Below are positions 1,056-20,015 of a stretch of DNA of 64,000 bases, piece after piece; positions within the stretch are counted from its first letter, which is position 1; each line of letters starts with the position of its first letter. Source of the DNA: Oikopleura dioica (Eukaryota; Animalia; Chordata); contig OU015566.1 in NCBI GenBank assembly GCA_907165135.1, positions 7,564,001-7,628,000 of the forward strand, given 5' to 3'. The notes under the pieces are model-generated. The model saw only the letters and a program-made list of their open reading frames with translations. It searched no databases and had not been told where the DNA came from. The position numbers and the translations under genes were made by a program.

Positions 1056-4000
1056 CTCGCAGTTAGAATTCTTCTATTTTATTTGGATCTCAAGATGAAT
1101 ATAGGAATGTTCTTTGAATGAGCGAGTTCTTTCTGAAAGAATTTACGATTGCTGAAAACAATTTTCCTAAATGTTAAAATGATAATGCCGTCATGCGATG
1201 TCATTTGATGATCTCCGGGCACCTGAAAGTTGTTAATAATTGTCGCTAATACGAGATTTACGCGCCAGGGTTGTACCATTTGCACATCTGACTCGCCACT
1301 GCTCAGTATTAGAAAATCGTCAAGAATTGCCGAGCTCAGCTATTTCCGCTTTAATAGCTAAAATGAAAGCTTAGTTAATTGAATAAATATAAAATTTAAT
1401 GAACTCCTTTCCTGTCCAACTTATTAATAAAAACATTAACTGATGTATTGGCAATTTAATATCGTAAATGAAAGGTAACAAAATAATGGTATTATTAATA
1501 ATAACGATTTAGTATTCATGGGATCTCAGGCCCTTCATTTCAGGATTTTATTTTAATAACATTTCAAATAAAGCTCCTGGAGAGTAATTCCTGAGAACCG
1601 GTTCGCGTGTTCCCAAACGATTCCGTCCTTAGAACAGTGTAATTCCAGCGATATAAAGCTTTAGGGGGCTTATGCTCGAGTTTGGGTTCGGATCATAACT
1701 GTCAGCGCGCGGCGCCTTGGGCACACGCGCGTTCGGGATCTTCATCTTCAAAAAGTGTTTTTGTTTGTCGTGAACTTGGCGCAAGTTCCACCGCTGAATC
1801 CGGCCATAAATCATTCAAGAAACTGTTAGTTTGTTATCCAAAACTTATTTGCATTATTTGAAGATACACTCTTAGAAATGCGCGCGTTTCTCCAAGATTG
1901 TCTAAGCTCGATAGAAGCGATTCAATCAGTCAAAAAGTTCTATCAGAAGCGTGACAGAAGTAAGCCAAGGTACTCCCCTTATTCGATAGCTACTGTCATT
2001 TGATGGGTATCATTTCCTCGAGCATTTTTGCAGGTCCTACCTTTTGCGTACTTTTCGCCTCGTAAATCGCGCGACATTAATGGCCCCAGGGCTGTGACTC
2101 TCTGAGCGGCACCAGCACAACTCAAATTAGGCTCAAAGCGGCACACGCTAATCCGTTCAGCAGTAAATTTTCAACGTGAAAATGGGCCTAGAGCAATAAT
2201 GGCCGGAATTTATTGCAGGAAGCGTCAAATACCCTTTCTGTCAATCAAATTGCTCGGGCTGAGCATCAGATCATGCTATTTTTGTGAAGTATTGTCGAGC
2301 TTTTTCCACGAGGGCAGCTCGGGTTGTTCATCAATGGGATAAGGGTTACTTGATGATTGCGAGGTTAAAATATGCTAAATAATGACAACATCACAACGTC
2401 ACGCACCTTTTCCCTTTCGTACTTTTCTAAGTGCTTAATTATCGCATCCGTACTGATGTAGTGTGATGCTATCCGCAGTTTTCCTCGCTTGGCAGCACAA
2501 TCGAACATACAATCATAAAATATGACGACATGATTTTATAAACAATATCAAAGAAGAATGTAATGTATCAAAACTGCCTCTGACATTTTGAATAACTCAT
2601 GAGCGCGTTAATTGCTGGAAATGAGAGTGCACACAAAGATCAATGGTCTGTAATGCTCTCTAACGAGGCTAACTCACACCCAGCTGAGTTTGAGCGTTGC
2701 CCCTCAAGCAATTTGCCCGTTGCGGGCACACATGGAACTTGTTGCAAAATGTTCCTCCTGGTCCTCGTAAACCTGCTTCAAAATAAAGGTCAGCCTGGAG
2801 AACACGCCTGGAGCGTTGTTTGGCCGCTCTCTTTGATCCAAGCAAAAAGCCGGAAGCGGAAAAGTGATTTGATCAAGCCGAAATTTTATAAAGTGTATCC
2901 AAATGCACATGGGAAATCGTAACTTATGCCACATCCAAAAAAGTAGAACAAGCAAGCACGGTAAATATTCACATTCCACCAAAGAAAAGTTGAAATTCAT
3001 ATTTCAGGAGTAAAGAATCGTAATTTCTTTCCTTTTAATTTTGACTCAGGGACCCTGAGTCAGGTTCCTGATCCGTGCTTTCGCGGCCCTGATTTGTCTT
3101 ATCGGTCTGTTTCAGAGCACAGATGCAACCCCCTCTCATGATCATTTCCTGGCCACGAAAACATGTGTCTCCCATTAGAGCAATTCAAATAGTAAATGTG
3201 ATCATAATATCGATATTAAAAATGTTGACCTTTTCGAGGACGAAGATTTTTGGGAAGGAAGTGGAGGAGATGCGATTATTGCCTGAGAAGTCCGTCGATG
3301 GCGCCAGTTTGACAAGACGACGGCGATGGAAGACGAAAACGGTACGTTGATAGTAGTCAAATTGCATCCTCGCTGTTTCCGAAGCGATCAGGAGATACAG
3401 TCAGGCGCTAGTTTCCTCGCTCGAGGAAAAAAAAAGAAATCGCTGGAAAAAAGTCGCTTTTTGATTTTATGCCCGCAGATGAGCGCTAAAGTAGGTTTTA
3501 TCTTGTTCAGCTGTAGGAATTATTAATTTTTATGGACCCGATGGTCCCGTCCATAAATCGAATGTACTTAAATCGAGAACGATTATTTCAAAATCGAGCT
3601 TACAACAGCTCAAACCTAAAACATGAAACGTTTTACCTTCATGTTGACTTTTCAGCACATCCGGGTGCTGCCAGCGGCCATCAGTTAATCTTATATTCTA
3701 TCTTCTAATAGCCGCCCATTTACACAATTAACTTTTCCCAGCATCGCCTCAATTTACGCCCAAGCTTCCGCTTGTGGCTCCATCGGAAACGTCGGGTAAT
3801 ATCTCATAACTTTGTTCGAACCGTAATTATTATAACTTGTCCGCAGTTTCGAAGCGTTAACTGCTCTTTATCGTCATTTGTTAGTGATTATTCAAAGCAC
3901 ACAATTGTAAATTTACAAAGATAAATCGATCACCAAGTCAACTAAGGAGCAATAACAGTGTATAAATTCAAAAAAGGACGCCGCAGCCGAGTCCCAAAGT

Positions 4001-5579
4001 GGAACAAGTCTCAAAGATAAAATGAATATTCACTCAAGCGCGATTGTGAGAAAATTAATCAAAAACAGAAAAATTGCAAGCTGGAAGTAATGAATGGCAA
4101 AAAGGCGAAAAGTGAAGGCCCGCAATTTTGTGTGCCCAAATGACCAAATGACAAATGGCGGATGCGTTATCAAGCGCCATTGAGGTCAGCTATCAAATGC
4201 TGCGGCGCAGGTACTTCCGAGTAAGAAGACACAAATGCGACCGCTAAGGCAGAAGGCATTTGTCAAGAATATCACCAGATTTCTTGCCAAGGAATTTTAT
4301 AACGGCTAGATCCATTAAAACTTGCTCGTTACAAACAGGGCTCATCCAGCGAATCAATCAAAATGTGATTTTGGCAGGGCAGATGATCGCCGCCTCATTC
4401 CAAAAAATCTCCATCATTTTCGATCATTTCGCGCCAAAATCATTGTTGGATAAAAAAAAGGTGCCGAGGAAATGGCACCTTACCGGATCGCTGCGAATCC
4501 ATCAAGAGGCCCGTTTCCGGATTTATCGAAAAATTAAAAAAAAATACCAAAAAATCAATCAACTCGATATGGCTTTGATTTCAACAAGAAGCTTACATCT
4601 TTAAGTCGTAAAAGATTGACTGTATGTGATTTACAGTATGCAAATTACAGTTTTAGGCAAACTTGTGGCGAAGGGTGTAGCGTGGTTATCAGAACTACAC
4701 ATGATAAAAATCTGCTTTAAAAATCATTAAAGACAATTAAGACCAAGCTGTGTGGCATGGAAAGTAGACGGAAGGAAGAGTGTATATCAGGGCTTCAGAG
4801 TTATAGCTTCCGCTGGTACGAGAGCGAGGTCTAAAAAGTACTTCATTAGGATGCTGGGCGAATGATAAAATTGGACATTTACAGCGCCCTAGAGATTAGT
4901 AGGTTACCGTAAACAAGGGTTAAAGGATTTCCGATGAGCGATCAACGCTTCGAGGGAGAGAACGACAAGTGAAATTACCATCATTTCTTTTGGTTCGGAA
5001 TTCTGCTCTTCTGGATGACGCTGGTAGATTCCCAGCTGTGTCATTGAAATGTTATAATGTCACAGATGTTCAGATAAAGTGTCCTTATGACTGCGAAAGG
5101 ACGATTTTAGCGTTCGTTAACCTTCATGAAATTTACCTTTTCAGATAAACGCAGTGCTGGGCCGGCGCTTTCGTGGAATCTTTCAATTACAGTAACCGGA
5201 TGACAGTAATGAAAATTCATCTTGTTTGTGGCTGAGAAAATCGAGTTAAAAGGGCATTAGATGAAACAGCTGAAAGTTAAGGCGCTTGACGATGTAGACT
5301 CGTTTCATCCCTTGGTTATTCAAATTTAGGATCAGATCAGATCGGCGAGCATAAATTCTTCTATGATAGATGTTCTATAGAGAAGATCTGACGAATTAAA
5401 TTATCCTGTTCGTAGCACTTTCACACACTCAAGCGTGACTATATTAAAAGCGTAAGCGCAATTTATCGCCTAAGCGATAGGTTAAAATGTAACGAGATGG
5501 AATACTCTATATATCTGCTGAATAAAAATACTTTATCCATCCTGTGTTTAAAAAGGGACTTGATTAATTGTCGAAGAGA

Positions 5580-5778
5580 GGGCTTATCATTCGGGCCTAT
5601 GATTCGAGCCATCCAATATCTCTAAAATCTGAGCTAATGATTAGGGTTAGGGACTGGGAACTCTTAAGGGGGGTCCGGGGGGCGAAGCCCCCCTGGTTTA
5701 GGCCTTAGGTGGGGGGTACCGGGGGGCGTAGCCCCCTGGGTTAGGTTTAGGCTTAGGGGCAGCCCGAATGATAACCCC
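5580..5778. mobile_element. MITE-like element with telomere-like repeats and two GC hairpins
   Basis: 17-bp inverted repeat with 1 mismatch (GGGCTTATCATTCGGGC / GCCCGAATGATAACCCC). Interior has TTAGGGTTAGGG, TTAGG variants and two GGGGGGCG(A/T)AGCCCCC hairpins. No clear TSD. Confidence 0.6.
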
Positions 5779-7187
5779 CTACTACCTTAATTCTGATGAT
5801 TGTGTTGAAGTGTCGGCTTAGCTTCGTCAGAGTAATGATTACGACATGATTTTGAAAGTATGAATATTCTTTTTACGAATCCCATATATCCACTCGTGAA
5901 AAGAAGACGATGCTTTTGCTATAATCGCTTGTAAATATTTGACTTTTTTGTTGCATTTATCGAGTGCTATGATTGAAAGCTGACAGTATCATTTACGATT
6001 AGTGATTCTTTCGTCTTCAGCAGTACGCGTGGAATTTGTCTAATTTTCATAAAAAAAGAATGCCGGTCGCGATGAATTTCTTTATTAATTTTGATTAGGC
6101 ACGATCATTTTTTGGCCCTTGACAGGTGATAGTGTGACAGTCGGATTTCCCATCGGAAGTACGTAGGTTATTGAGTGCCTAAATCATAACTGCGATCATA
6201 ACTGCGATAATCGCAAAGTTAACCGATGATCGATGGCCGGGAATCGGACTTGCGCTTTCAATAAGGATAAGAAGCTGATTCGGGACCACCAGCAAGATTC
6301 CCCGAGAAAGATTTTGAAATCAACGATGACTTCCTTTCACTACCGCATCAATCTCGCCAGAAAATGACCCGCTTTTTTTGCTTTTGATATTTTTATTCGT
6401 TTCGGGGCATATTTTTGTAATATTCACAGTTGACTAGTAATATTAGTAGTAATGGCCATCCCCCTCTCGGGAAGAGTTTTTATTATTCTAGTTGAGTGGT
6501 TAATTATTACCTCCATCTCCAAGTTCTACACCACTAATTGGCACCAACGTCAAGCTCAACACCAGTTATTTACAGCCATCTGGCATGGTTGAATAAACAA
6601 GAGCCCGTTATCATATAAAATGATTCTCATGATGTCATAAACGTATATTACAGATGATAAAATTTTTTTCAGGATCTTAAAAATCTTTCCAGCATTTTTG
6701 AGACGTCAACAAGCCAGTGCATTGTCAATAAATTTAAAATAAATGGAGAAGATGATTAGGGTAATCATTGATTTCGACATTTTTTCGCGGAGATTCTATT
6801 TGCCAATCGAGTAGAAATATATTCGAAACCAAACTCATAAACGTCATTTTCTGTTGGTCACAGGCTATATATTTGGATAAAATTAGCTGATAAAGACTTT
6901 CATCATGATTAAATATGAGAGACGATATGAAGCAGTCCGGTTCTCTCGTAGAGTTATCCTGTAAATATATTTTGAAGCTCTCTCATACCCTCAGGAATTT
7001 AGAATTCCCCATGAAAGTCATGCTTTACAAGGTCTTTCTATCATGCTAATAACCTCAGGCAAAAGATCAACCGAGGTTGAAAGAAGTAGAAAACTATATT
7101 TCCTTGCCAAAGATATACCTCTGCTTCCCGATTGAAGGCACCTCAATTCAAGGCAAAAATTTCGGAAATCCTGCATCCTGCCAATTA

Positions 7188-7748
7188 TTATTTAAGGCAC
7201 ATTTTCTCGCGATAAATTTTATTGGCACAAAATTTCAAGTTCATTTTTTGTAAAGAATGATTTGATAGAAACTTGCGTAGATCTTTTCTCTTTTTCGCCT
7301 TGAGTGTGAGTGTTGGCCTGTTTTCATCTAAAAGATTTTTAAATAAACCAATTCTCGTTATGACTGACCTCATCTTGATGAAAACTTTCGCTTTCTCTCG
7401 TATGGCGATCTGCGCATAAACATATTTGAATTTTAAAGCGGAGTCGACGATTTTAAAACTGAAGAACGTATTTTCCAAATCACATGCCACTAGTTTGAAA
7501 TAATACGGATCCGTAGTGATGGATCTGAATGCTGATCCACTGAATGGAAGCATCATAACTGTTTCTACGTTGCTTCCTTCCGTTAAGCAAATTCCATTGT
7601 AATTAATCTTGAGTATGTGTGGTGATTTAAGAATATTTTCTGTGATGCCTCCAATTTGATAGATTCCAACTTCATAAATCGAGTCTCTCTTCAAAGTGAT
7701 GTTAGGCAATTTAAGCTCTGAGCTCTTTGACAAAAGGTTGACGATCAT
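7188..7748 (-). CDS. Left-arm ORF, 186 aa: putative penton-like ORF1 fused to ORF2 by a 14-bp deletion
   Basis: Intronless ORF identical to 8108-8500 up to QIAIRE, then continuing in the frame of the downstream ORF (MRSVITRIGLF...). Confidence 0.6.
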   Translation of the reverse strand: MIVNLLSKSSELKLPNITLKRDSIYEVGIYQIGGITENILKSPHILKINYNGICLTEGSNVETVMMLPFSGSAFRSITTDPYYFKLVACDLENTFFSFKIVDSALKFKYVYAQIAIREKAKVFIKMRSVITRIGLFKNLLDENRPTLTLKAKKRKDLRKFLSNHSLQKMNLKFCANKIYREKMCLK

Positions 7749-8107
7749 TTTGAATAAAAATAAAAGTTCAGTTTCTATTTATAGCCAAAGTTTATAGCCT
7801 GGGGGCTAAAATGTTAAAACCCTTTTTCCACTACGACTTGCAGTTTCCTGTTGAGTTTCTTAACCATGGACTTATCATTCGCTCAGTCATCCGCCGAAGT
7901 AAAAAAACAAAAGAAACATCAGAGACTGTGCACAATCATACCAACAGTCGAATGACAACGATGCGGCGGATGACTGAGCGAATGATAAGTCCGTGGTTAA
8001 GAAACTCAACAGGAAACTGCAAGTTTAAACATTAGGTTTTAACATTTTAGCCCCCAGGCTATAAACTTTGGCTATAAATAGAAACTGAACTTTTATTTTT
8101 ATTCAAA

Positions 8108-8500
8108 ATGATCGTCAACCTTTTGTCAAAGAGCTCAGAGCTTAAATTGCCTAACATCACTTTGAAGAGAGACTCGATTTATGAAGTTGGAATCTATCAA
8201 ATTGGAGGCATCACAGAAAATATTCTTAAATCACCACACATACTCAAGATTAATTACAATGGAATTTGCTTAACGGAAGGAAGCAACGTAGAAACAGTTA
8301 TGATGCTTCCATTCAGTGGATCAGCATTCAGATCCATCACTACGGATCCGTATTATTTCAAACTAGTGGCATGTGATTTGGAAAATACGTTCTTCAGTTT
8401 TAAAATCGTCGACTCCGCTTTAAAATTCAAATATGTTTATGCGCAGATCGCCATACGAGAGATAGAACAATCAAAAAAGCGAAAGTTTTCATCAAGATGA
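8108..8500 (+). CDS. Right-arm ORF1, 130 aa: putative minimal single jelly-roll minor capsid (penton)-like protein
   Basis: Intronless ORF. ITLKRDSIYEVGIYQI and the C-terminal PYYFKL...FKIVD...YAQIAIR resemble recalled Polinton penton motifs. The stop overlaps the next ATG (ATGA, 8497-8500). The function call is inference. Confidence 0.45.
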   Translation: MIVNLLSKSSELKLPNITLKRDSIYEVGIYQIGGITENILKSPHILKINYNGICLTEGSNVETVMMLPFSGSAFRSITTDPYYFKLVACDLENTFFSFKIVDSALKFKYVYAQIAIREIEQSKKRKFSSR

Positions 8501-9598
8501 GGTCAGTCATAACGAGAATTGGTTTATTTAAAAATCTTTTAGATGAAAACAGGCCAACACTCACACTCAAGGCGAAAAAGAGAAAAGATCTACGCAAGTT
8601 TCTATCAAATCATTCTTTACAAAAATGAACTTGAAATTTTGTGCCAATAAAATTTATCGCGAGAAAATGTGCCTTAAATAATAATTGGCAGGATGCAGGA
8701 TTTCCGAAATTTTTGCCTTGAATTGAGGTGCCTTCAATCGGGAAGCAGAGGTATATCTTTGGCAAGGAAATATAGTTTTCTACTTCTTTCAACCTCGGTT
8801 GATCTTTTGCCTGAGGTTATTAGCATGATAGAAAGACCTTGTAAAGCATGACTTTCATGGGGAATTCTAAATTCCTGAGGGTATGAGAGAGCTTCAAAAT
8901 ATATTTACAGGATAACTCTACGAGAGAACCGGACTGCTTCATATCGTCTCTCATATTTAATCATGATGAAAGTCTTTATCAGCTAATTTTATCCAAATAT
9001 ATAGCCTGTGACCAACAGAAAATGACGTTTATGAGTTTGGTTTCGAATATATTTCTACTCGATTGGCAAATAGAATCTCCGCGAAAAAATGTCGAAATCA
9101 ATGATTACCCTAATCATCTTCTCCATTTATTTTAAATTTATTGACAATGCACTGGCTTGTTGACGTCTCAAAAATGCTGGAAAGATTTTTAAGATCCTGA
9201 AAAATTTTATCATCTGTAATATACGTTTATGACATCATGAGAATCATTTTATATGATAACGGGCTCTTGTTTATTCAACCATGCCAGATGGCTGTAAATA
9301 ACTGGTGTTGAGCTTGACGTTGGTGCCAATTAGTGGTGTAGAACTTGGAGATGGAGGTAATAATTAACCACTCAACTAGAATAATAAAAACTCTTCCCGA
9401 GAGGGGATGGCCATTACTACTAATATTATAATATATAGCAGAAATGACACTGTAGCAAGAAATTGAATATATAGTTTTGTTCTTTTGTTAATTGAAATTG
9501 CACGTTATTTGTGACTTATAATGATAATAATAAAATTATATAGATACGCAAGGAAAAACGAGCTTGGCAGCTCAGAAGAACAGAAAAAGACGAATATC

Positions 9599-11500
9599 CT
9601 AAAATGTTGTTTTTGAAGAGTTGCGGGCAGTTTTGGTGAATTTAGGCTTTCTCGGACGAATCGAGGAGTTTTTCTTTGTCGGCTTGGGCGACGCGGGCTT
9701 TTGTAGTCTGAAAAAGTTATGAAGGATGAAGTTGATGTCACGCCTTACCTGTATTTTTCGTAAGTGTAGAGAGACCCTCCAGAGAGATTAATAAGCTGTC
9801 CGATGATCAACAAGGGAGTCGCTGCAACGCCACCGAATGTGTACATGCCTGAAACACGTGTTAACAAGGCCTTTTTAAAACAGCACGAAATTTCAATAAA
9901 CAAAGTGCAGGATTATGCCACTGCTCCATAATAAGACTCTCAGACTTCGAAAAGGCCGGATTAACTAACCGATAATCGTCGTCAAGGCAGATTTAATGAC
10001 GCCAACGCATGCAGTGGTTAACGCAGAGTTGACCGTTGTGCAGAGGAAGATCGAGTAGCTACAGGCAAAAGTTAAATTTAGAAAATTAAAAGATAAAAGT
10101 GCTTGAGGCTCTCTTGCAAAGGCGCCTTTAACAACAACACCTCTGTTTTACCTGAAAACACAGGCGAAAGAAGTAACAACGCCGAGAGCAAAGAGGAATC
10201 CAGGCTCGCTCCAGTGAGGATAGCTCTTCATCGAGTTGTACTCTCCCGACAAGAAAACGACTGCGAAAACGATTGGGAGGCAGTTGACAGAGTTCACGTA
10301 CAGGATTGTGAGAGTTTTGGCAGAAGAAGTTTTGTACGAGCCGAGCTTGTTGTCGGAACCCATTCGTTGAAGAGTCAGGAGATAGAGAGCCTGAGCAATA
10401 AGATTTGTTTTCATGGTTGTTTAATTTACCTGGGTAAGAACAGAGAGCGATCCGAAAGTGTAGCTCTTGAAGTCAAAATCCAAGTCTCCCTGAGCAGCAG
10501 TAATCGTACCAGCCGTGATCAAAATGATCGCCATGATAATTGAGGAAGTAGTTCGCTGCGGGTAAATGCAAGGTCCGAGGAGAAGAGAAGCAATAGGCAC
10601 GCACCTGAAGTTTGGAAATTCGTCAAAATGGCACGTTTCTAATGTCTCACCTTCTCATTGCATTATACATCGGAATATTCATTCCAGACAAGGCAAACAA
10701 GGCTAGAATGACATTTGAGACGTAGAATAGCGAGAGCATTGACAATTTTTTGCCACGCTCGAGGGTGTAGGCCAGAACGATGTTATCATCAAGTTTACCA
10801 AGTCTTCTGAGCAGCGAGATAAGAGCCGAAAAGAGGGCAAGCTGACTAGATACGGATTTCAAGAGAGAAAAATGAAATTTAAAACTCGTTCAGCTCAAAT
10901 AAATCAAAACATGCATGACTTCAAGTTCTTCCGGCGCACGTTAATTACGTCGCGAAAATAAGCCCAGTGCTTCAGCGCGAAATTGAGAGTGAACATGTTT
11001 TATGCAACTCGGAAAAATTCCAAAAACTTGAAACCCGTTATCAGAAAACCATAAAGTTTGGATAGTGGAACTCCCACGAGTTGAGCACCCACTTATTGAT
11101 AAAGTTCATCGAGCCAGAACATATTCCATAGAAGAGAGCAGTGCCAAAGGCGTATCCAATTTGGCTGAAAAAGGAAAATAAAGGATGATTATTTTTGATA
11201 GAATTATTATCTCAGATAATTTATCTTTCGTTTTTGAATTTTTCACTGACGTTAATCGCGTTTTTATCGCAAATTATCCATGAATATACGCAAAATATAC
11301 CAATTAAAGAAAATTATTCTCGTGATTTATTTTAAGCAATTTTTAATAGATATCAATCAGTAAAGAAGTTATACAAAATTATATAAGATATAATAAATAT
11401 ATATTATATATTTGTGAATAAAATTAAATTTATTGAATAAATTTATTTATTTTAATATTGAAAATGAATTATCCTATTTCAAAGATTACCTGTCCGCCAT
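9599..11500 (-). CDS. Nucleotide-sugar transporter, SLC35D family (multi-exon)
   Basis: Exons encode ALFYGICSGSMNFINKWVL, LSGMNIPMYNAMRR, ALYLLTLQR, YSIFLCTTVNSALTTACVGVIKS and GQLINLSGGSLYTY, with GT-AG introns. ATG at 11500. Confidence 0.85.
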
Positions 11501-12151: not shown

Positions 12152-12613
12152 ATGAAACCTGGGGATCCTTCATTGATGCAAAGAAAGAAAAGACAGCCCG
12201 AGAAAGAAAACGTCGAGCAACGACCACCGAGCAACCAGAAGTCGCCAAAGAAGGCAGAGGAGAAGACAGTCCAAGAGTCACTCGTCGAGAAGGGCGAAGA
12301 GGAGGGCGAGATCTACCCCGTCGAGAAAATTATCGGGAGACGAAACTTCCGGGGAACGATCCAATACGCAGTTCTTTGGGAAAATTGGAGCATTGACGAC
12401 GCAACTTGGGAGCCACTCGAGAATTTGACTGAATGCGGGGAGAAGATCAAAGAATTCGAAGAGAAACTCGCAGAGATTCGACTATTGATCAAGATCGAAA
12501 AGGTCGCTTCCTTTCTGGACTCAATCGCTGACATCTTTTAGTCATCTTTCATTGATCTTTCGTTATTGAATGTACTATTCGTCTTATACTACAAGTACCC
12601 TTACGAATGTTAA
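12152..12613 (+). CDS. Chromodomain protein 1 of tandem cluster
   Basis: YPVEKIIGRRNFRGTIQYAVLWENWSIDDATWEPLENL. A 39-nt GT-AG intron at 12503-12541 gives a hydrophobic last exon ending at 12613. The 5' end is uncertain. Confidence 0.85.
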
Positions 12614-12912
12614 AACTTTCCCTTTAAAATTTATAGGCTATAAATAATTACGACAACTAATCTGCTAAAATCGTATCCTTTTGTAACTTTCATCCGAAGA
12701 TTTGAACCGAATAAACTGAATCCTACTGAGATCGATTGACTTCGAAACTGCAAAAGTAAACAGTATTGGGCCCGGGTTTCCATTGGGCTGTCCAAGATCC
12801 CCCGCTGTAGATAGCAACTCAAGCGCGCAAAAATTTTATTGCTCAAGGCCTAGTGAGCGGGACTAGTTTTCAAAACGAGAAACGGAAGCTTCGAAAATTT
12901 CATTTTTTGAAA

Positions 12913-14341
12913 ATGGAAGAATCAAGTACTCCTCAACCCAGAGTCTCCCGAAAAAAGAATCGAATTCAAAAAAGACGAAAGCCAAAAAGATCTGACTTCA
13001 TGACAACTAACAAGAACGTCCTTCACAACTTTATTCACTACAAGGTACTGAACCTTTACATTCAAATATAATCAAGGTTCCTAGGGTGAAGTGATTACAA
13101 TCATTCAAACAAGAATTAACGAAGAAGAAAGGCAAAAGTATCCGGACGGATACACGACGTTTTCAGCATACCGACGTTTTCAGCAACCGACGTTTTCAGC
13201 ATAACGACGTTTTCAGCGCCGTTGAATTCGTCGGTTTGCTGAAAACGTCGGTTTGCTGAAAACATCGTTTTTCACCTGAAAACGCGTGGGCGTTTGCCGG
13301 AACGAAATTTTCAAACCAAATGGATCTAAAGGCGAGGTTCTCGCAATTTAATTGGCTAGTTAATAGTTTAAAAGCATTTCTAAATGAGTCATTAAGAATG
13401 CATTATTTAGAAAACATTATTATGCATTATTTAGAAAAATGTAAGAATTAGCTAAATTACTTCTTAATACATTATTATCATAATAATCATTAGTCACTAT
13501 AAATCACCAGAAAGTTTACAGTATAAACGTATTATCTAGTTTCGTGAATCTGTTTTAAAACAATGAAAATAATGATAAATCAATATTGAAAAAGATAAAA
13601 ATAATAATTTTGTTAAATATAATCTTTTGTAAATGATTCATTTAATGAATATTATTTATATATTATTTATATATTTTATGAATATTAATAATATTACATC
13701 GATTTTATGTTATTTTACGATTTACGGAAATATCGTTTTCAGATGTAGTTTGATAAAATGATTGCCTCTCTAAACGCCCACGCGTTTTCAGGTGAAAAAC
13801 GACGTTTTCAGCAAACCGACGTTTTCAGCAAACCGACGAATTCAGCGGCGCTGAAAACATCGTTATGCTGAAAACGTCGGTTGCTGAAAACGTCGGTATG
13901 CTGAAAACGTCGTGTATCCTATCCGGACAGAATCCGATATTGGCCGCTGAAGCAAATCTATGATCTAAAAAATAGAGTTCGACCTGGAGAATTAGAAAAG
14001 GAAGAGGACGAGAAAGAAGATAAAGTCCCGTCAGAAAAGCCAAAATCAACCGCAGAATATGAAGTAAAAAACGAGGCGCTAAAAACCAAGTCTGCTACAC
14101 TGAGCTTCATGATGAGCCCGATCCCCGGCAAAAGTCCGTAGTGATAGCGCAAACCGACTTGCCTGAATATGAAGTCGAAGAAATCATCGATAAGAGAGTA
14201 GTGAAACATGATTCCGAAGAGATCATAACTTACAAAGTGCTGTGGAAGGGATACCCACCTGAGGAGGCGACATGGGAGGGTGCTTCAAACTTGGGGAACT
14301 GCTCTGAATTGATTCAAGAGTTTGAACGAAAAAGAACATGA
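12913..14341 (+). pseudogene. Chromodomain gene 2, interrupted by a transposon and an apparent frameshift
   Basis: N-terminal exons are paralogous to genes 3 and 4 (KNRIQKR.KPK.SD...HYK). Exon 2 is split by the element at 13148-13919, and the frame changes near 14060. C-terminal chromodomain YEVEEIIDKR...YKVLWKGYPPEEATWEGASNL. Confidence 0.7.
13148..13919. mobile_element. Mutator/foldback-like non-autonomous element (772 bp)
   Basis: ~150-bp TIRs starting GGATACACGACG, built of tandem CGACGTTTTCAGC units, around an AT-rich core. 9-bp TSD TATCCGGAC at 13139-13147 and 13920-13928. Confidence 0.92.
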
Positions 14342-14783
14342 ACTGATGCCGGAAAAATCATCGAAATAACAACTCTAAAACCTTCTAAATAAATCATTCT
14401 AACAATCCATCATGCTGTCTAGTAGAATAGTTGTCACTGTGTTGAATGTTTAAAACCAATAAATCACCAAAGCCTTTAACTTTTTCGCTTTCTTTAAAAA
14501 GCATAATGGTTAGCATTTAGGCAAACCATAAAAACGACAGGGGAGGAAGAGTTTTGAAATCTAGAGAAAAGCTGGAGTTGATAAATCTTGAAGTTTCAGG
14601 GCGTGGCAGTGAGGAACTGTGCAAGTTCCGGGTTTTCATTTCTGGATTCACTGGACTCTCACGAGTTCTGACTCAGAAGGCGCAACCCAATCACCGCCGT
14701 AAAGCGAGAGATAGCGAATTTTCAATTTTAATTCTCTGTCAGAAAAAAGGTTTCTTGAGGAGGACCAAGTACCAGATCCAGTT

Positions 14784-16484
14784 ATGGGGAGAATAAAGAA
14801 TCGGATTCAAAAAAGACCAAAGCCTAAGTTGTCGGACGCTATCTGTACTGATAAGAGCATTGTCAATAACCTCATTCATTACAAGGTAAATACGACTATT
14901 GAAGAGAATTATGAACGAATATTCAGGGCTATATAATGATGGTCATTCACACGAGACTAGAGCCAGGAGAGAAGATTGAAAATGAAGAAAACAAACGATA
15001 TTGGCCGTATAAAGATATGCATCTACTGAAGAACGTAGTCAGACTAACGAAGGAACAACTTCGCCCCCAGGAGAAAGAACCAGTGAAGACAGAGAGGAAA
15101 GAAAATACCGGACGAAATCAACGACGAGGACGCGCGGCGAAAAAGCGAGGCATCGACTTCTACGCTGAAAACAACGATGACGATTTGATCTTGGATGAGC
15201 CCCAGCAGCCGGTGTTAAAGGTATTCATCTGTATGTTTTTGATGATTTATGCCCTTTCATAGACGGAGCCGGTGAGTGAGGAAAATCAAGAAGAGGAAGA
15301 AGAGGTCGACAAAATCATCGGAAAGCGCTTTGACGAACGAGCCAAAACAGTATATTATCAAGTGTTGTGGAAGGGACTGCCGCTTTCTTACGCAACATGG
15401 GAGCCCCTATCGAATCTGACGAATTGCAAGGAGTGCATCAAGGACTTTGAAAAGAAGGAAACAGCGGGAAAACCCATCCAGCAGCGCGGAAGAGGGAGGC
15501 CAAAAAAGGAGCCGTTGTTGATCAAGGCCGAATACAACGATGAAGTCCACGCTCGATCTCTACGTCCAACGCCTCGACAACGAGTTCTGTCGAATACGTC
15601 GGTAAAAGTAAGTTTTATAAACAAAAATTTGCTATATTATTCGCGGAAGGTCGAACCCTCAACGAAGAAAACGAAGAAGAAAGCAGCCTCGCAGAAGGAA
15701 TGGGAAGTCCAGGAGATCATCGACAAACGCCGATTCGACAACGGAGTTATTCGATATCATGTGCTCTGGAAAGGATGGCCTCGGGAGTCAGGAACATGGG
15801 AGCGCAAAGCTAACCTCACGAACTGCGCTGCAAAGCTTAAAGAATTCGAGAAGAAGCTGTCTTCAAAAGAAAGAAAGAGTAGCAGAAGCAGACCAAGAAA
15901 GGAGGAAGTTGTAATCAAGGACAGAGGTGGTAAATTTCTCCCTAACGATATCTAAAATACCTACTATTGGCAATAGTCTATTGCTTAAAAACTAGACTTT
16001 GAGAGTAAATTATCCACCTCTAATCAAGACAGAATATCTTGAAAATCCAGAATTGCCTGTTGTCCGACAAACAAAACGGAAGAAAAAACTAGTTGATATA
16101 AAGGTATCTCAATTGTTATTATTCACAATAATATTAGTAATTTTTCGATCAAACAAATTAAAATTATTTGAAAATGAATTTATATATGGTACTTTATTTA
16201 ATAAAATTTGATAGACGGAGCCTGTGGATCTAACCCAAGACTGGGACCCTGCAACGGAATGGGAAGTCGAAAAGATCATTGGAAAGCAGAGTCTCAATGA
16301 CGGAACCGTTCAATACCGAGTTCTCTGGAAAGGATGGCCTGCCGAGACAGCAACATGGGAGCCCTTGATGAACCTGACAAGCTGCGACGAGAAAATTCGA
16401 GACTTCGAGAACAATGCCAACGCCAGAAGATCGAAGCGCATCAACATCCAGAAGGACCGAAAGAACCCGAATGAGCGAGAGTGA
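14784..16484 (+). CDS. Chromodomain gene 3: three chromodomains plus AT-hook
   Basis: Spliced model gives a shared N-terminal domain, then CD1 (YQVLWKGLPLSYATWEPLSNL), AT-hook RGRGRPKK, CD2 (YHVLWKGWPRESGTWERKANL) and CD3 (YRVLWKGWPAETATWEPLMNL). Confidence 0.88.
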
Positions 16485-17070
16485 GAATACAGAATGAAAA
16501 ACTGAAAGAAACATGTTACATTGTGCATAATTTTTGCTGGTTTAACATGAAATATAGCTCGATTGAAAACTAATAAATCATGAAATCCCATTTTTCTTTC
16601 AATTTCTTACATAAAAAAAGCATAAAGTAGATCTTATACAGCAGCGTGAAGATGATGAGTATCCGAAATTCCTACTACCGAGCTAAGGGGCGAATCATCG
16701 GCAGCGTGTCAAATGCCAAATCATGAGATATCGGTGACCGTTATCTTAAAAAGATTACATGATTCATGTGACATGGACTTTCCCATTTTCGTTTCTACGC
16801 AACTCTGTAGAACTCAGAATTGAAAAACAAGATCTAAACAACTTTTATCTACACGCTTGATGCGTTTCCGGATCAAAACTGATCCGTATCTCGAAAACAC
16901 AGCAGAGACGCATCGCCAATACTCGAGATTTGTTTTCTAGACTCAAAAGTTCTGACTCAGAAAGCGCAAGTTGCACCCCAATCACCGCGGAAAAAGCGAG
17001 AGAAAGCAGATTTTCAATATTCTCAGTCAGGAAACAGTTTCTTGAGGAGAAGAAAGTACCAGATCCAGTC

Positions 17071-18410
17071 ATGGGGAGAATCAAGAACCGAATTCAAAAA
17101 AGACCAAAGCCAAAGTTGTCGGATTACATTTGCACTGATAAAAACATTGTTAATAACATCATTCTTTACAAGGTAAGTTAACCTATTGAAGAGTAATTAA
17201 TTATGAATGAATTTATTTAGGGTTATATAATGACGATCAAACATACTAGATTGGAGCCGGGAGAGAAGATCGACGACGAAAACAAACGATATGTGCCGTT
17301 TGAAGACATGCACCTATTGAAGAACGTAGTGAGGCTGACGAAGGAGCAACTTCGACCTCAGGAGAAAGAGCCAGTGAAGGTAGAGGGCAATAAAAGCTGC
17401 GAAGAAAATCAAGGACGAGAACACAAGGCGCAAGAAGGAGGAAAAAAATCCCAAGATGAAGATAACAACGCTGAAGTTATCTGCGATCATCTAAAACAAG
17501 TTTCGCAAAAGGTATTCTCCTTTAAATTTCTGATAGTATATTTTTACTTTTCTATAGACAGCGCCACTGCCTGATGGAACTCAAAAATCCGAAAATAAAT
17601 GCAATACGCGCGTTTTACGTTCAACAGCACGAAAACGAATGCAGTCGACTACTGAGATAAAAGTAAGCCTAAGAAACTACTTCTGTTTAATTAATTTCTT
17701 ATAAGAAACTCGACGCTGAAGCTCCACAAGAATCTGAGGAATCTAAAAAAGTGGGGAATTGTGAGAAACATGACAAGAGCTCCCCAGTAGCGAGCTGCGA
17801 ACCTGCGTTAAATTCAGATGAAATTGAGGCGAGTCCTGAGGTGAGATAACTGTTCGACCTTTTCTCCAAGTAATCTTACAGGTGTCAAATATCAGCCCAG
17901 CTGAAGAAACCGACAAAAAGGAAGACACTCAAGGTTCATCTCGCTGCAGCCGAATTCAAGCGCCTCAAAAGAATGTGGATGGTCACAAGGTTCATTTATA
18001 CATCCAAAAAAATCACCATAACTTTTATTTAGACTTCAGAAAATCAAACCAATAACCGAAGATTGCGACCGAGACCAAGAAAAAGATTGGAGCCGCGAAG
18101 AATCATCGGAAAACACCGAGTAACTAGCGGAGCAATTTGTTATTTGGTGCTTTGGAAAGGGCTCCCCAGATACTGTGCAACCTGGAAGCTCGGATCTCAG
18201 TTGCCCGCTGAGATGATAGAAAAGTTCGAAAAGACGATCAGACGGAAAGATGATACAGACCAGAATGTGTCAGGCGGACAGAAGGCAAAGAGAGGAAGAC
18301 CAAAAAAGACAGAAGTTCGAGCTTTCACAAGCAAAGTCAGCGTAAGAAGATCCACTCGTATCAACAATCAAAACGTCCGACCAAATCCAAATCGACGACA
18401 CCGAAAATAA
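17071..18410 (+). CDS. Chromodomain gene 4: one degenerate chromodomain plus AT-hook
   Basis: N-terminus is highly similar to gene 3 and the exons splice in frame. EPRRIIGKH...YLVLWKGLPRYCATWKLGSQL is followed by KRGRPKK. Confidence 0.82.
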
Positions 18411-18575
18411 AGAATAGGATCCAACGACAATTTATTTGTATGATAAATATTTTGTGATGTCTATTAAAATTCGAGTTCACATGGAAAATATATGTACTGC
18501 TCACATTCAATGCTGAAAAATCAATAAATCATAAAATTATATCTCCTCTTTATTTCCTGTTTCTGGCAGAAAAGC

Positions 18576-20015
18576 ATGACACCTATTGAAGCAGAACAGG
18601 TCCTAAACCGGACGATCAACAACCAATACGGCCTTGTTAGAAAGATTGGCTCTGGTTCGTTCGGAACCATTTATCTGGGCACAGAGAGCAGGACCAAAAC
18701 AGAGCTCGCCATCAAAGTTGAGCGCAAATACTCCCGCAAACCACAGCTTCCATTCGAAAGCCAAGTCTACAAACGGCTCAACCACCCGTTCATGAAGAGC
18801 ATGAGGCCACCAGGATTCCCGAAATTGAGATATTTTGGGGTCGACAATGATTACAGTTATTTGGTAATGGATTTGGTCGGACCGACGCTAGAGTCTCTTT
18901 TCAACTTTTGCTCGAGAAGTTTCAAACTAAAAACAGTTCTGCAGATTATGGATCAACTAGGTTTTGTGACAGCTTTTTATTCATTACAGACAAAACGGAC
19001 AATTCCGGAACGGGCAATTCCGGAGATTTGAGGGAAATCGTTAAAAATTTTGTAAACGCACAATTCCGGAAATTTCAGACAAAAAATTCAACTGAGAGGT
19101 CTATTTTGTATATAGGACCACCTTTTCGCGAAATATTACGAAGAATTTTCAGAAAAGAAATGAGAGAAGGGTCAAAAAAGCCATGAGTAGCACTAAAAAA
19201 GCCCATTTTCTGGTTGACACCCTTAAAAAGGCACTTTGGAAGCAAAAAATTTTCAATTAGAATTCGGACAATTCCGGAGATTTGGCGCTTTTCCCCGAAA
19301 AAAAAAATTCCGGAATTGTCCGTTTTGTCTGTATATTGATTTTCTAGTGACAAGAGTTGAACATGTCCACAGCAAGGATCTCATCCATCGAGACATCAAA
19401 CCAGGTAAAAACTATGATCGAATATCTTCTTGAAATCAAAGAAGACAATCTGACAATCGGACTGGGATCGACTTCAAGTCAGATAATGATGATCGACTTC
19501 GGTCTGTCCAAATTCTACCGCCATCCGAAAACGAAAAAGCACAAAACTTTTGAAACGGACGCTTCTTTCGTGGGAACAGCAAAATTCTGCTCTAGGTACA
19601 CTTCCAAAGGAGAGACATCTTCAAGACGAGATGATATGGAAAGCGTTGCGTATACTATGATTTGTAAGAGACAATAACATTTCTTCTAATGGTAGATTTT
19701 TTACTCGGAACCCTTCCTTGGGTGAATTTGAAGTCAACGACAAGATGGCAAAAGCTAGAAATGATCTTGGACTCGAAGCAAACCATGGTCGTTGAGAAAA
19801 CTTTGAAAGGCTTTCCTAAGGAGCTTCAGCAATTTGTGACCTACTGCCGATCATTGAAATTCGAAGATCAGGTACAAAGTCAAATGTAAATTGGACTCTG
19901 GTTATGTCTAACTCTTCAGCCAGACTACATGTATCTACGAAATCTGCTCAGAGGCCTTGCGTTTCAGTGGAAAATAGAGTTTGATGGAGTTTATTGCTGG
20001 AACAAAAAGAAATAA
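18576..20015 (+). CDS. Casein kinase 1 family kinase (divergent)
   Basis: IGSGSFGTIYLG, LAIKVE, YLVMDLVGPTLESLFNFCSRSFKLKTVL, HRDIKPDN, IDFGLSK, SRRDDMES, LPWVNLK and PDYMYLR across GT-AG introns. Confidence 0.93.
18987..19331. mobile_element. Tc1/mariner-like MITE inside CK1 intron 1
   Basis: 24-bp TIR CAGACAAAACGGACAATTCCGGAA with TA on both flanks and internal CAATTCCGGA repeats. Lies within intron 18961-19346. Confidence 0.88.

Follow-up and report, generated by a model that had tools for sequence, protein, structure and literature searches.

A palindromic, probable Maverick/Polinton derivative in the genome of the larvacean Oikopleura dioica, possibly an integrated snap-back genome

By inference, Mavericks/Polintons are viruses whose DNA is replicated in linear form by protein priming; their virions and free replicating genomes are unseen. 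Vertebrate Mavericks end in 6-bp motifs, most often 5'-(AGT)2//(ACT)2-3', are flanked by perfect 6-bp duplications and carry terminal inverted repeats (TIRs) of 46-1,447 bp (Barreat and Katzourakis, PMC8097293). Another form of the Maverick/Polinton end motif is (AG)3...(CT)3. In nematode Polintons the TIRs measure 100-1,500 bp and the target-site duplications (TSDs) 5-8 bp (PMC10748475), and butterfly polintons have TIRs of ~2 kb that contain virion-type genes, which are hence present in two copies per element (bioRxiv 10.1101/2025.02.07.637071). Snap-back genomes, in which a terminus and its adjacent gene occur twice, inverted around a short turn-around, form one of the known classes of defective DNA-virus genomes (adeno-associated virus, PMC8235507; review, PMC13506859). 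Here we describe an element at positions 6445-9421 of a 64,000-nt stretch of DNA from the larvacean tunicate Oikopleura dioica (Okinawa, OKI2018_I69; assembly GCA_907165135.1). The whole stretch that was analysed is denoted the window and all coordinates refer to it; the window is part of contig OU015566.1 (14.5 Mb). The O. dioica genome is very compact and has been described as poor in DNA transposons, and the literature searched gave no report of Mavericks in Oikopleura or of a short palindromic Maverick derivative. An earlier note, made from the letters of the window, had proposed that the element is a Maverick/Polinton of which one terminus was duplicated head-to-head.

A repeat finder and a global alignment of the arms showed that 6445-9421 is a near-perfect palindrome of 2,977 nt. 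Measured from the AGTAGT and ACTACT termini, the left arm (6445-7896) is 1,452 nt long and the right arm (7964-9421) 1,458 nt, and between them is a non-complementary loop of 67 nt (7897-7963). The inverted-repeat complementarity itself spans 6438-7896 and 7964-9428. These analyses confirmed the near-identical inverted arms of ~1.45 kb around a 67-bp loop reported in the earlier note, which had also called the structure fully palindromic; the inverted symmetry is indeed near complete, but it excludes the loop and a non-pairing patch of 14/10 nt that interrupts the stem ~62-75 nt away from the loop. The arms share 98% identity and differ by five substitutions and six indel events. All five substitutions and two of the indel events are found in the loop-proximal 75 nt, whereas the outer 1,377 nt hold no substitution and four indels. 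Three of these four are length differences of 1-2 nt in homopolymer runs, and since the assembly was built from Nanopore reads (PMC8008620), they may be sequencing errors left in the assembly.

The exact centre of the loop is occupied by a 14-nt near-palindrome with six of seven positions paired, which was matched within 2 nt of the centre by 46 of 20,000 shuffles; the 26-27 nt on either side of it are unpaired. As single-stranded DNA the central 461 nt fold with a predicted energy of -222 kcal/mol, as compared with -43 +/- 4 for shuffled sequences. No second copy of the arm was detected by blastn within the window, and Tandem Repeats Finder detected no tandem-repeat arrays inside 6445-9421. 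When the loop and the patch were compared with the remainder of the window, only isolated 11-mers were shared, at chance level, leaving a templated origin of either unsupported. In addition, a 33-nt stretch of the arms (6697-6729 and 9140-9172) is 79% similar to 10714-10746 in the adjoining host gene, probably by chance.

The termini carry the end motif described for Mavericks (PMC8097293). As the earlier note had claimed, the element begins with AGTAGT, (AGT)2, at 6445-6450 and ends with ACTACT, (ACT)2, at 9416-9421, both read on the forward strand. AGTAGT occurs only 25 times among the window's 128,000 positions, indicating that its exact placement at both ends of the complementarity is not due to chance. 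The motifs are bordered by identical copies of the hexamer AATATT, at 6439-6444 on the left and at 9422-9427 on the right. The earlier note took this hexamer for a 6-bp TSD. It is present on both flanks, but AATATT is its own reverse complement, which the earlier note had missed, and the complementarity of the arms reaches one base beyond it (6438/9428). Hence it can be read as a direct repeat, in which case the match is a 1-in-4096 event, or equally as an extension of the palindrome by 6 nt. All three terminal features of a Maverick, inverted repeats, end motif and 6-bp flanking repeat, are therefore present, with the flanking repeat a putative duplication given its self-complementarity.

Each arm contains a single real open reading frame (ORF), which is oriented from the centre towards the terminus; the remaining ~940 nt towards the terminus hold no convincing ORF. 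The right-arm gene (8108-8500, forward strand) encodes 130 amino acids. Its copy in the left arm (7188-7748, reverse strand) is frameshifted and reads as an ORF of 186 amino acids, compared with ~125-130 in the protein family to which it belongs. The break is due to one indel of a length not divisible by three, after which reading continues in another frame; the element thus holds one gene in two copies, with one frameshift break and no stop codons. Candidate TATA-like motifs are located ~30 nt upstream of the ATG in both arms (7776-7783, reverse strand; 8073-8080, forward strand). The annotation of the source genome places no gene inside the element and an exact look-up in a protein collection retrieved neither ORF. 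The protein genes that had been assigned to both arms thus amount to one small ORF per arm, of which the left copy is frameshifted and neither is annotated.

A protein search without length limit retrieved homologues of 120-145 amino acids, the best of which is 53% identical (E 2.5e-35). They cover only the first ~120 residues of the arm protein, and a length-limited search with the 186-aa left-arm ORF gave no match. A profile search extended the family to more than 20 clusters, in which a conserved I-R-E motif is followed a few residues later by the C-terminus, indicating that the 130-aa right-arm copy has family length. All members are metagenomic and nearly all are encoded on contigs of 0.6-3 kb, one being on a contig of 11.4 kb. 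That almost all relatives come from contigs of ~1 kb may reflect the general shortness of such contigs, or repeated terminal segments that collapsed when short reads were assembled. All members lack both a name and a Pfam domain. Neither Pfam nor PHROGs gave a match to the arm ORFs or to the whole family, and a profile search of PDB sequences with the family was likewise empty, even at E <= 10. Three longer apparent relatives (P0008-P0010, 473-1,309 amino acids) were rejected, as they are low-complexity repeat proteins that align in several short stretches and have unrelated Pfam content; the search without length limit gave no evidence of longer kin or fusions of the arm protein.

For the arm protein, AlphaFold gave a confident all-beta sandwich when supplied with the 20-sequence alignment (pLDDT 84, pTM 0.76); the model made without an alignment (pLDDT 35) was not used. 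The best viral match found by Foldseek, an uncharacterised protein of 161 amino acids, comes from Drosophila-associated adintovirus 2 (E 1.6e-4, TM 0.62); small capsid-associated jelly rolls of iridoviruses rank after it. In the PDB, the protein matched 8hif_y3, a small chain from the Singapore grouper iridovirus capsid (TM 0.50), as well as TNF-like folds, nucleoplasmin and jelly rolls that bind carbohydrate. The all-beta model together with these matches points to a single jelly roll as the predicted fold of the arm protein. The pentons of Polintons have this fold (PMC4028283), and minor capsid proteins of nematode Polintons have been accepted from ~110 amino acids (PMC10748475). To label the arm protein a candidate minor or vertex capsid protein is reasonable, though unproven.

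Taken together, we consider the element (6445-9421) to be very probably a non-autonomous, palindromic derivative of a Maverick/Polinton. The derivation proposed in the earlier note is supported by the end motif and the 6-bp duplication (PMC8097293) and by the jelly-roll gene, for which an adintovirus protein is the best fold match; a small gene of this kind is compatible with a minor capsid protein of these elements. The arms, although long, fall inside the published range of Maverick TIRs (46-1,500 bp). In other respects the element departs from a Maverick. It is 3 kb long, compared with 13-25 kb, it resides in a larvacean tunicate, and it consists entirely of terminal repeat plus the 67-nt loop. 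Genes for polymerase B, integrase, the major capsid protein, an ATPase and a protease were found neither in the element nor in the window. The absence of polymerase B and integrase from the element, which the earlier note had reported, was thus borne out, and the retrovirus-like (rve) integrase that characterises Mavericks/Polintons is missing from the window as a whole. Outside the element, the window's ORFs of at least 130 amino acids are all host genes, and the virion module within it is reduced to the one small gene with its predicted single jelly roll. With the core genes absent, the element is only a derivative and not itself a Polinton by the definition quoted in PMC5499653.

Two described systems resemble the element in having a gene present twice. 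In butterfly polintons, as here, the gene lies within the terminal repeats; those are, however, full-length elements whose interior is complete, and their repeats encode hexon and adenain, whereas here the repeats alone remain and the gene encodes a 130-aa jelly roll. Snap-back or copy-back genomes (PMC8235507; PMC13506859) share with it a terminus and adjacent gene present twice, in inverted orientation around a short turn-around, and a pair of identical ends acting as signals for replication and integration. In the element, two inverted copies of one terminus are indeed arranged around a short turn-around. Unlike those genomes, which are extrachromosomal or encapsidated during infection, it is integrated in the germline with a target-site duplication, and its origin in replication is inferred. 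The DNA of adenovirus incomplete particles, studied by Daniell in the 1970s, is reportedly another case, with long inverted duplications of one end.

We tentatively favour an origin in which one terminus was copied by snap-back and the product then integrated in trans, over loss of the interior of a longer element. In this scheme a free linear parent element would be copied by protein priming, and a strand ending ~1.5 kb from one terminus would fold back at a short inverted repeat. Copying of the folded strand back to the same terminus would give a snap-back defective genome, a molecule with two identical ends. Identical ends suffice for an integrase of the retrovirus type, so that the integrase of a helper could insert such a molecule, creating the 6-bp duplication, and the centre would decay afterwards to leave the loop and the patch. 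That the element is an integrated fossil of a Maverick snap-back genome, inserted into the germline of a chordate by the integrase of its helper, is possible, and we put it forward with reserve. Several observations argue for snap-back copying. The whole 2,977 nt are symmetric about a single axis. A near-palindrome at the exact centre of the loop is not expected of an arbitrary deletion junction, and the substitution-free outer 1,377 nt of the arms are expected if one arm templated the other.

A number of points weigh against this origin. The same structure could arise by interior loss from a parent with long gene-bearing repeats. Known Maverick TIRs are as long as the arms, reaching 1,447 bp in vertebrates (PMC8097293) and 1,500 bp in nematodes (PMC10748475), and the butterfly polintons provide gene-bearing repeats of ~2 kb (bioRxiv 10.1101/2025.02.07.637071). 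A simple fold-back predicts symmetry outward from the turn, yet the 26-27 nt on each side of the central near-palindrome and the 14/10-nt patch are unpaired. Later changes must therefore be assumed, and neither route explains the centre simply. Such changes are plausible in a long palindrome in this host, as O. dioica relies on microhomology-mediated joining for the repair of breaks (PMC11067885). The flanking hexamer is its own reverse complement, and polishing with multi-mapping reads could partly account for the lack of substitutions between the arms (PMC8008620). The fold match of the arm protein is weak (TM 0.5-0.6), and searches of Pfam, PHROGs and PDB sequences gave no sequence-level match to a named penton or to a known Polinton protein.

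Loss of the interior is the alternative that survives best, although we regard it as rather unlikely. In this account a Maverick whose gene-bearing TIRs measured at least 1.45-1.5 kb kept only 67 nt of the sequence between them, the remainder being lost either before integration or in place within the chromosome; if in place, the 6-bp duplication would stem from insertion of the parent and mobilisation in trans would be unneeded. Non-autonomous DNA transposons usually arise by internal deletion. The TIR lengths given above, and the genes held in two copies by the butterfly repeats, show that a suitable parent is conceivable, and a deletion that began in one long repeat and ended in the other would automatically yield equal arms with the surplus as loop. 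The clustering of all inter-arm substitutions at the inner ends likewise resembles the fraying inner edge of a natural TIR, and the microhomology-mediated repair of O. dioica produces deletions (PMC11067885). On the other hand, the parent would have to be at or beyond the upper limit of known TIR lengths, the two deletion end points would have to fall at nearly equal depth (within 67 nt), and the near-palindrome at the exact centre (46 of 20,000 shuffles) is left unexplained. The window alone fits either route, replication snap-back or loss of the interior, and cannot show which of them was taken. A fold-back in place after a chromosome break was also considered and rejected, since it would have duplicated the flank too and flank duplication is not seen.

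It is improbable that the element does not derive from a Maverick at all, being instead a palindromic non-autonomous transposon of the foldback or another type, or host DNA that was duplicated locally in inverted orientation, with ends that are Maverick-like by chance. Such an element would account for a window that holds none of the core genes; the self-complementary hexamer could belong to the palindrome, the window contains other small inverted-repeat elements, and 44% of the repeats of the genome are unclassified (PMC8008620). However, (AGT)2 and (ACT)2 are placed exactly where the 6-bp repeat starts, the flanks are unrelated host sequence, and the gene product is a virus-like jelly roll, matched best by a protein of an adintovirus. 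Foldback elements and long-TIR elements resembling miniature inverted-repeat transposable elements (MITEs) are similar to the element in being non-autonomous and nearly all inverted repeat. The arms of Foldback elements are built of tandem subrepeats, whereas those of the element have none and carry a gene, and its end motif and TSD length are of the Maverick type; membership of the Foldback family was rejected on the lack of subrepeats.

An assembly artefact, be it a Nanopore fold-back chimera, a haplotype-merging error or a collapsed full-length element, is most improbable: although the genome was assembled by Canu from 221x Nanopore reads and then passed through Racon, Pilon, HaploMerger2 and Hi-C (PMC8008620), and the three homopolymer-length differences between the arms are typical of Nanopore error, a chimera would re-enter the reverse complement of the same flank, whereas here the flanks diverge after 7 nt, with an annotated host gene on the right, the termini are defined, the loop is asymmetric, the arms have indels of their own, and coverage of 221x with reads to ~43 kb would suffice to bridge an element of full length. 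The two flanks are distinct stretches of host DNA, which shows that the palindrome is not an assembly fold-back, the danger to its proposal that the earlier note had pointed out.

Outside the element, the adjoining host gene (9599-11500, reverse strand) is annotated with 305 amino acids and has membrane-protein-like exons; its low-coordinate end is 172 nt from the flanking repeat. The annotation shows no gene over 2152-9598, more than 7 kb, compared with a genome average of ~1 gene per 3.7 kb, and more unclassified repeats may be present in the element's left flank. Two 31-nt direct repeats of G-runs and C-runs, 44 nt apart, were noticed at 5668-5742, ~700 nt to the left of the element, and 743-1055 contains a MITE-like pair of inverted repeats, each 35 nt long, which are 97% complementary and separated by 243 nt. 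A scan of the window against Rfam found no RNA family.

At 13148-13919 there is a foldback-like element of ~770 nt with 148-nt inverted arms that are 98% complementary and made of ~17-nt subrepeats; built in this manner, it looks quite different from the palindrome at 6445-9421. It sits inside an annotated gene for a chromodomain-kinase of 1,199 amino acids, and part of the excess of TTTTCAG in the window stems from it. Chromodomain coding units are clustered in 12152-20015 (12152-12541, 14141-14341 and 15272-15955), the first of them being a 129-aa chromodomain ORF that corresponds to an annotated protein of GCA_907165135.1, at ~7.58 Mb on OU015566.1. An exact look-up placed this host protein on a single contig. 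Direct repeats at a distance of ~2.29 kb (14745-15196 and 17032-17487) inside the chromodomain-kinase gene suggest an internal tandem duplication.

Even if the interior was lost by deletion, the element is a clear Maverick trace in a larvacean tunicate, and under that reading too it shows that the integrase requires only the two ends. It also ties a family of ~125-aa jelly-roll proteins, otherwise seen in metagenomes only, to elements of the Maverick type. If the snap-back origin is true, the element would be an indirect record of the extrachromosomal replication of Mavericks as linear DNA, and Mavericks would have defective parasites of their own, as true viruses do. The absence of substitutions between the arms over the outer ~1.4 kb suggests that the event was recent and that a helper is active in the lineage now or was so recently; if the element is the fossil of a snap-back genome, the near-identity of its arms would imply recent Maverick activity in O. 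dioica.

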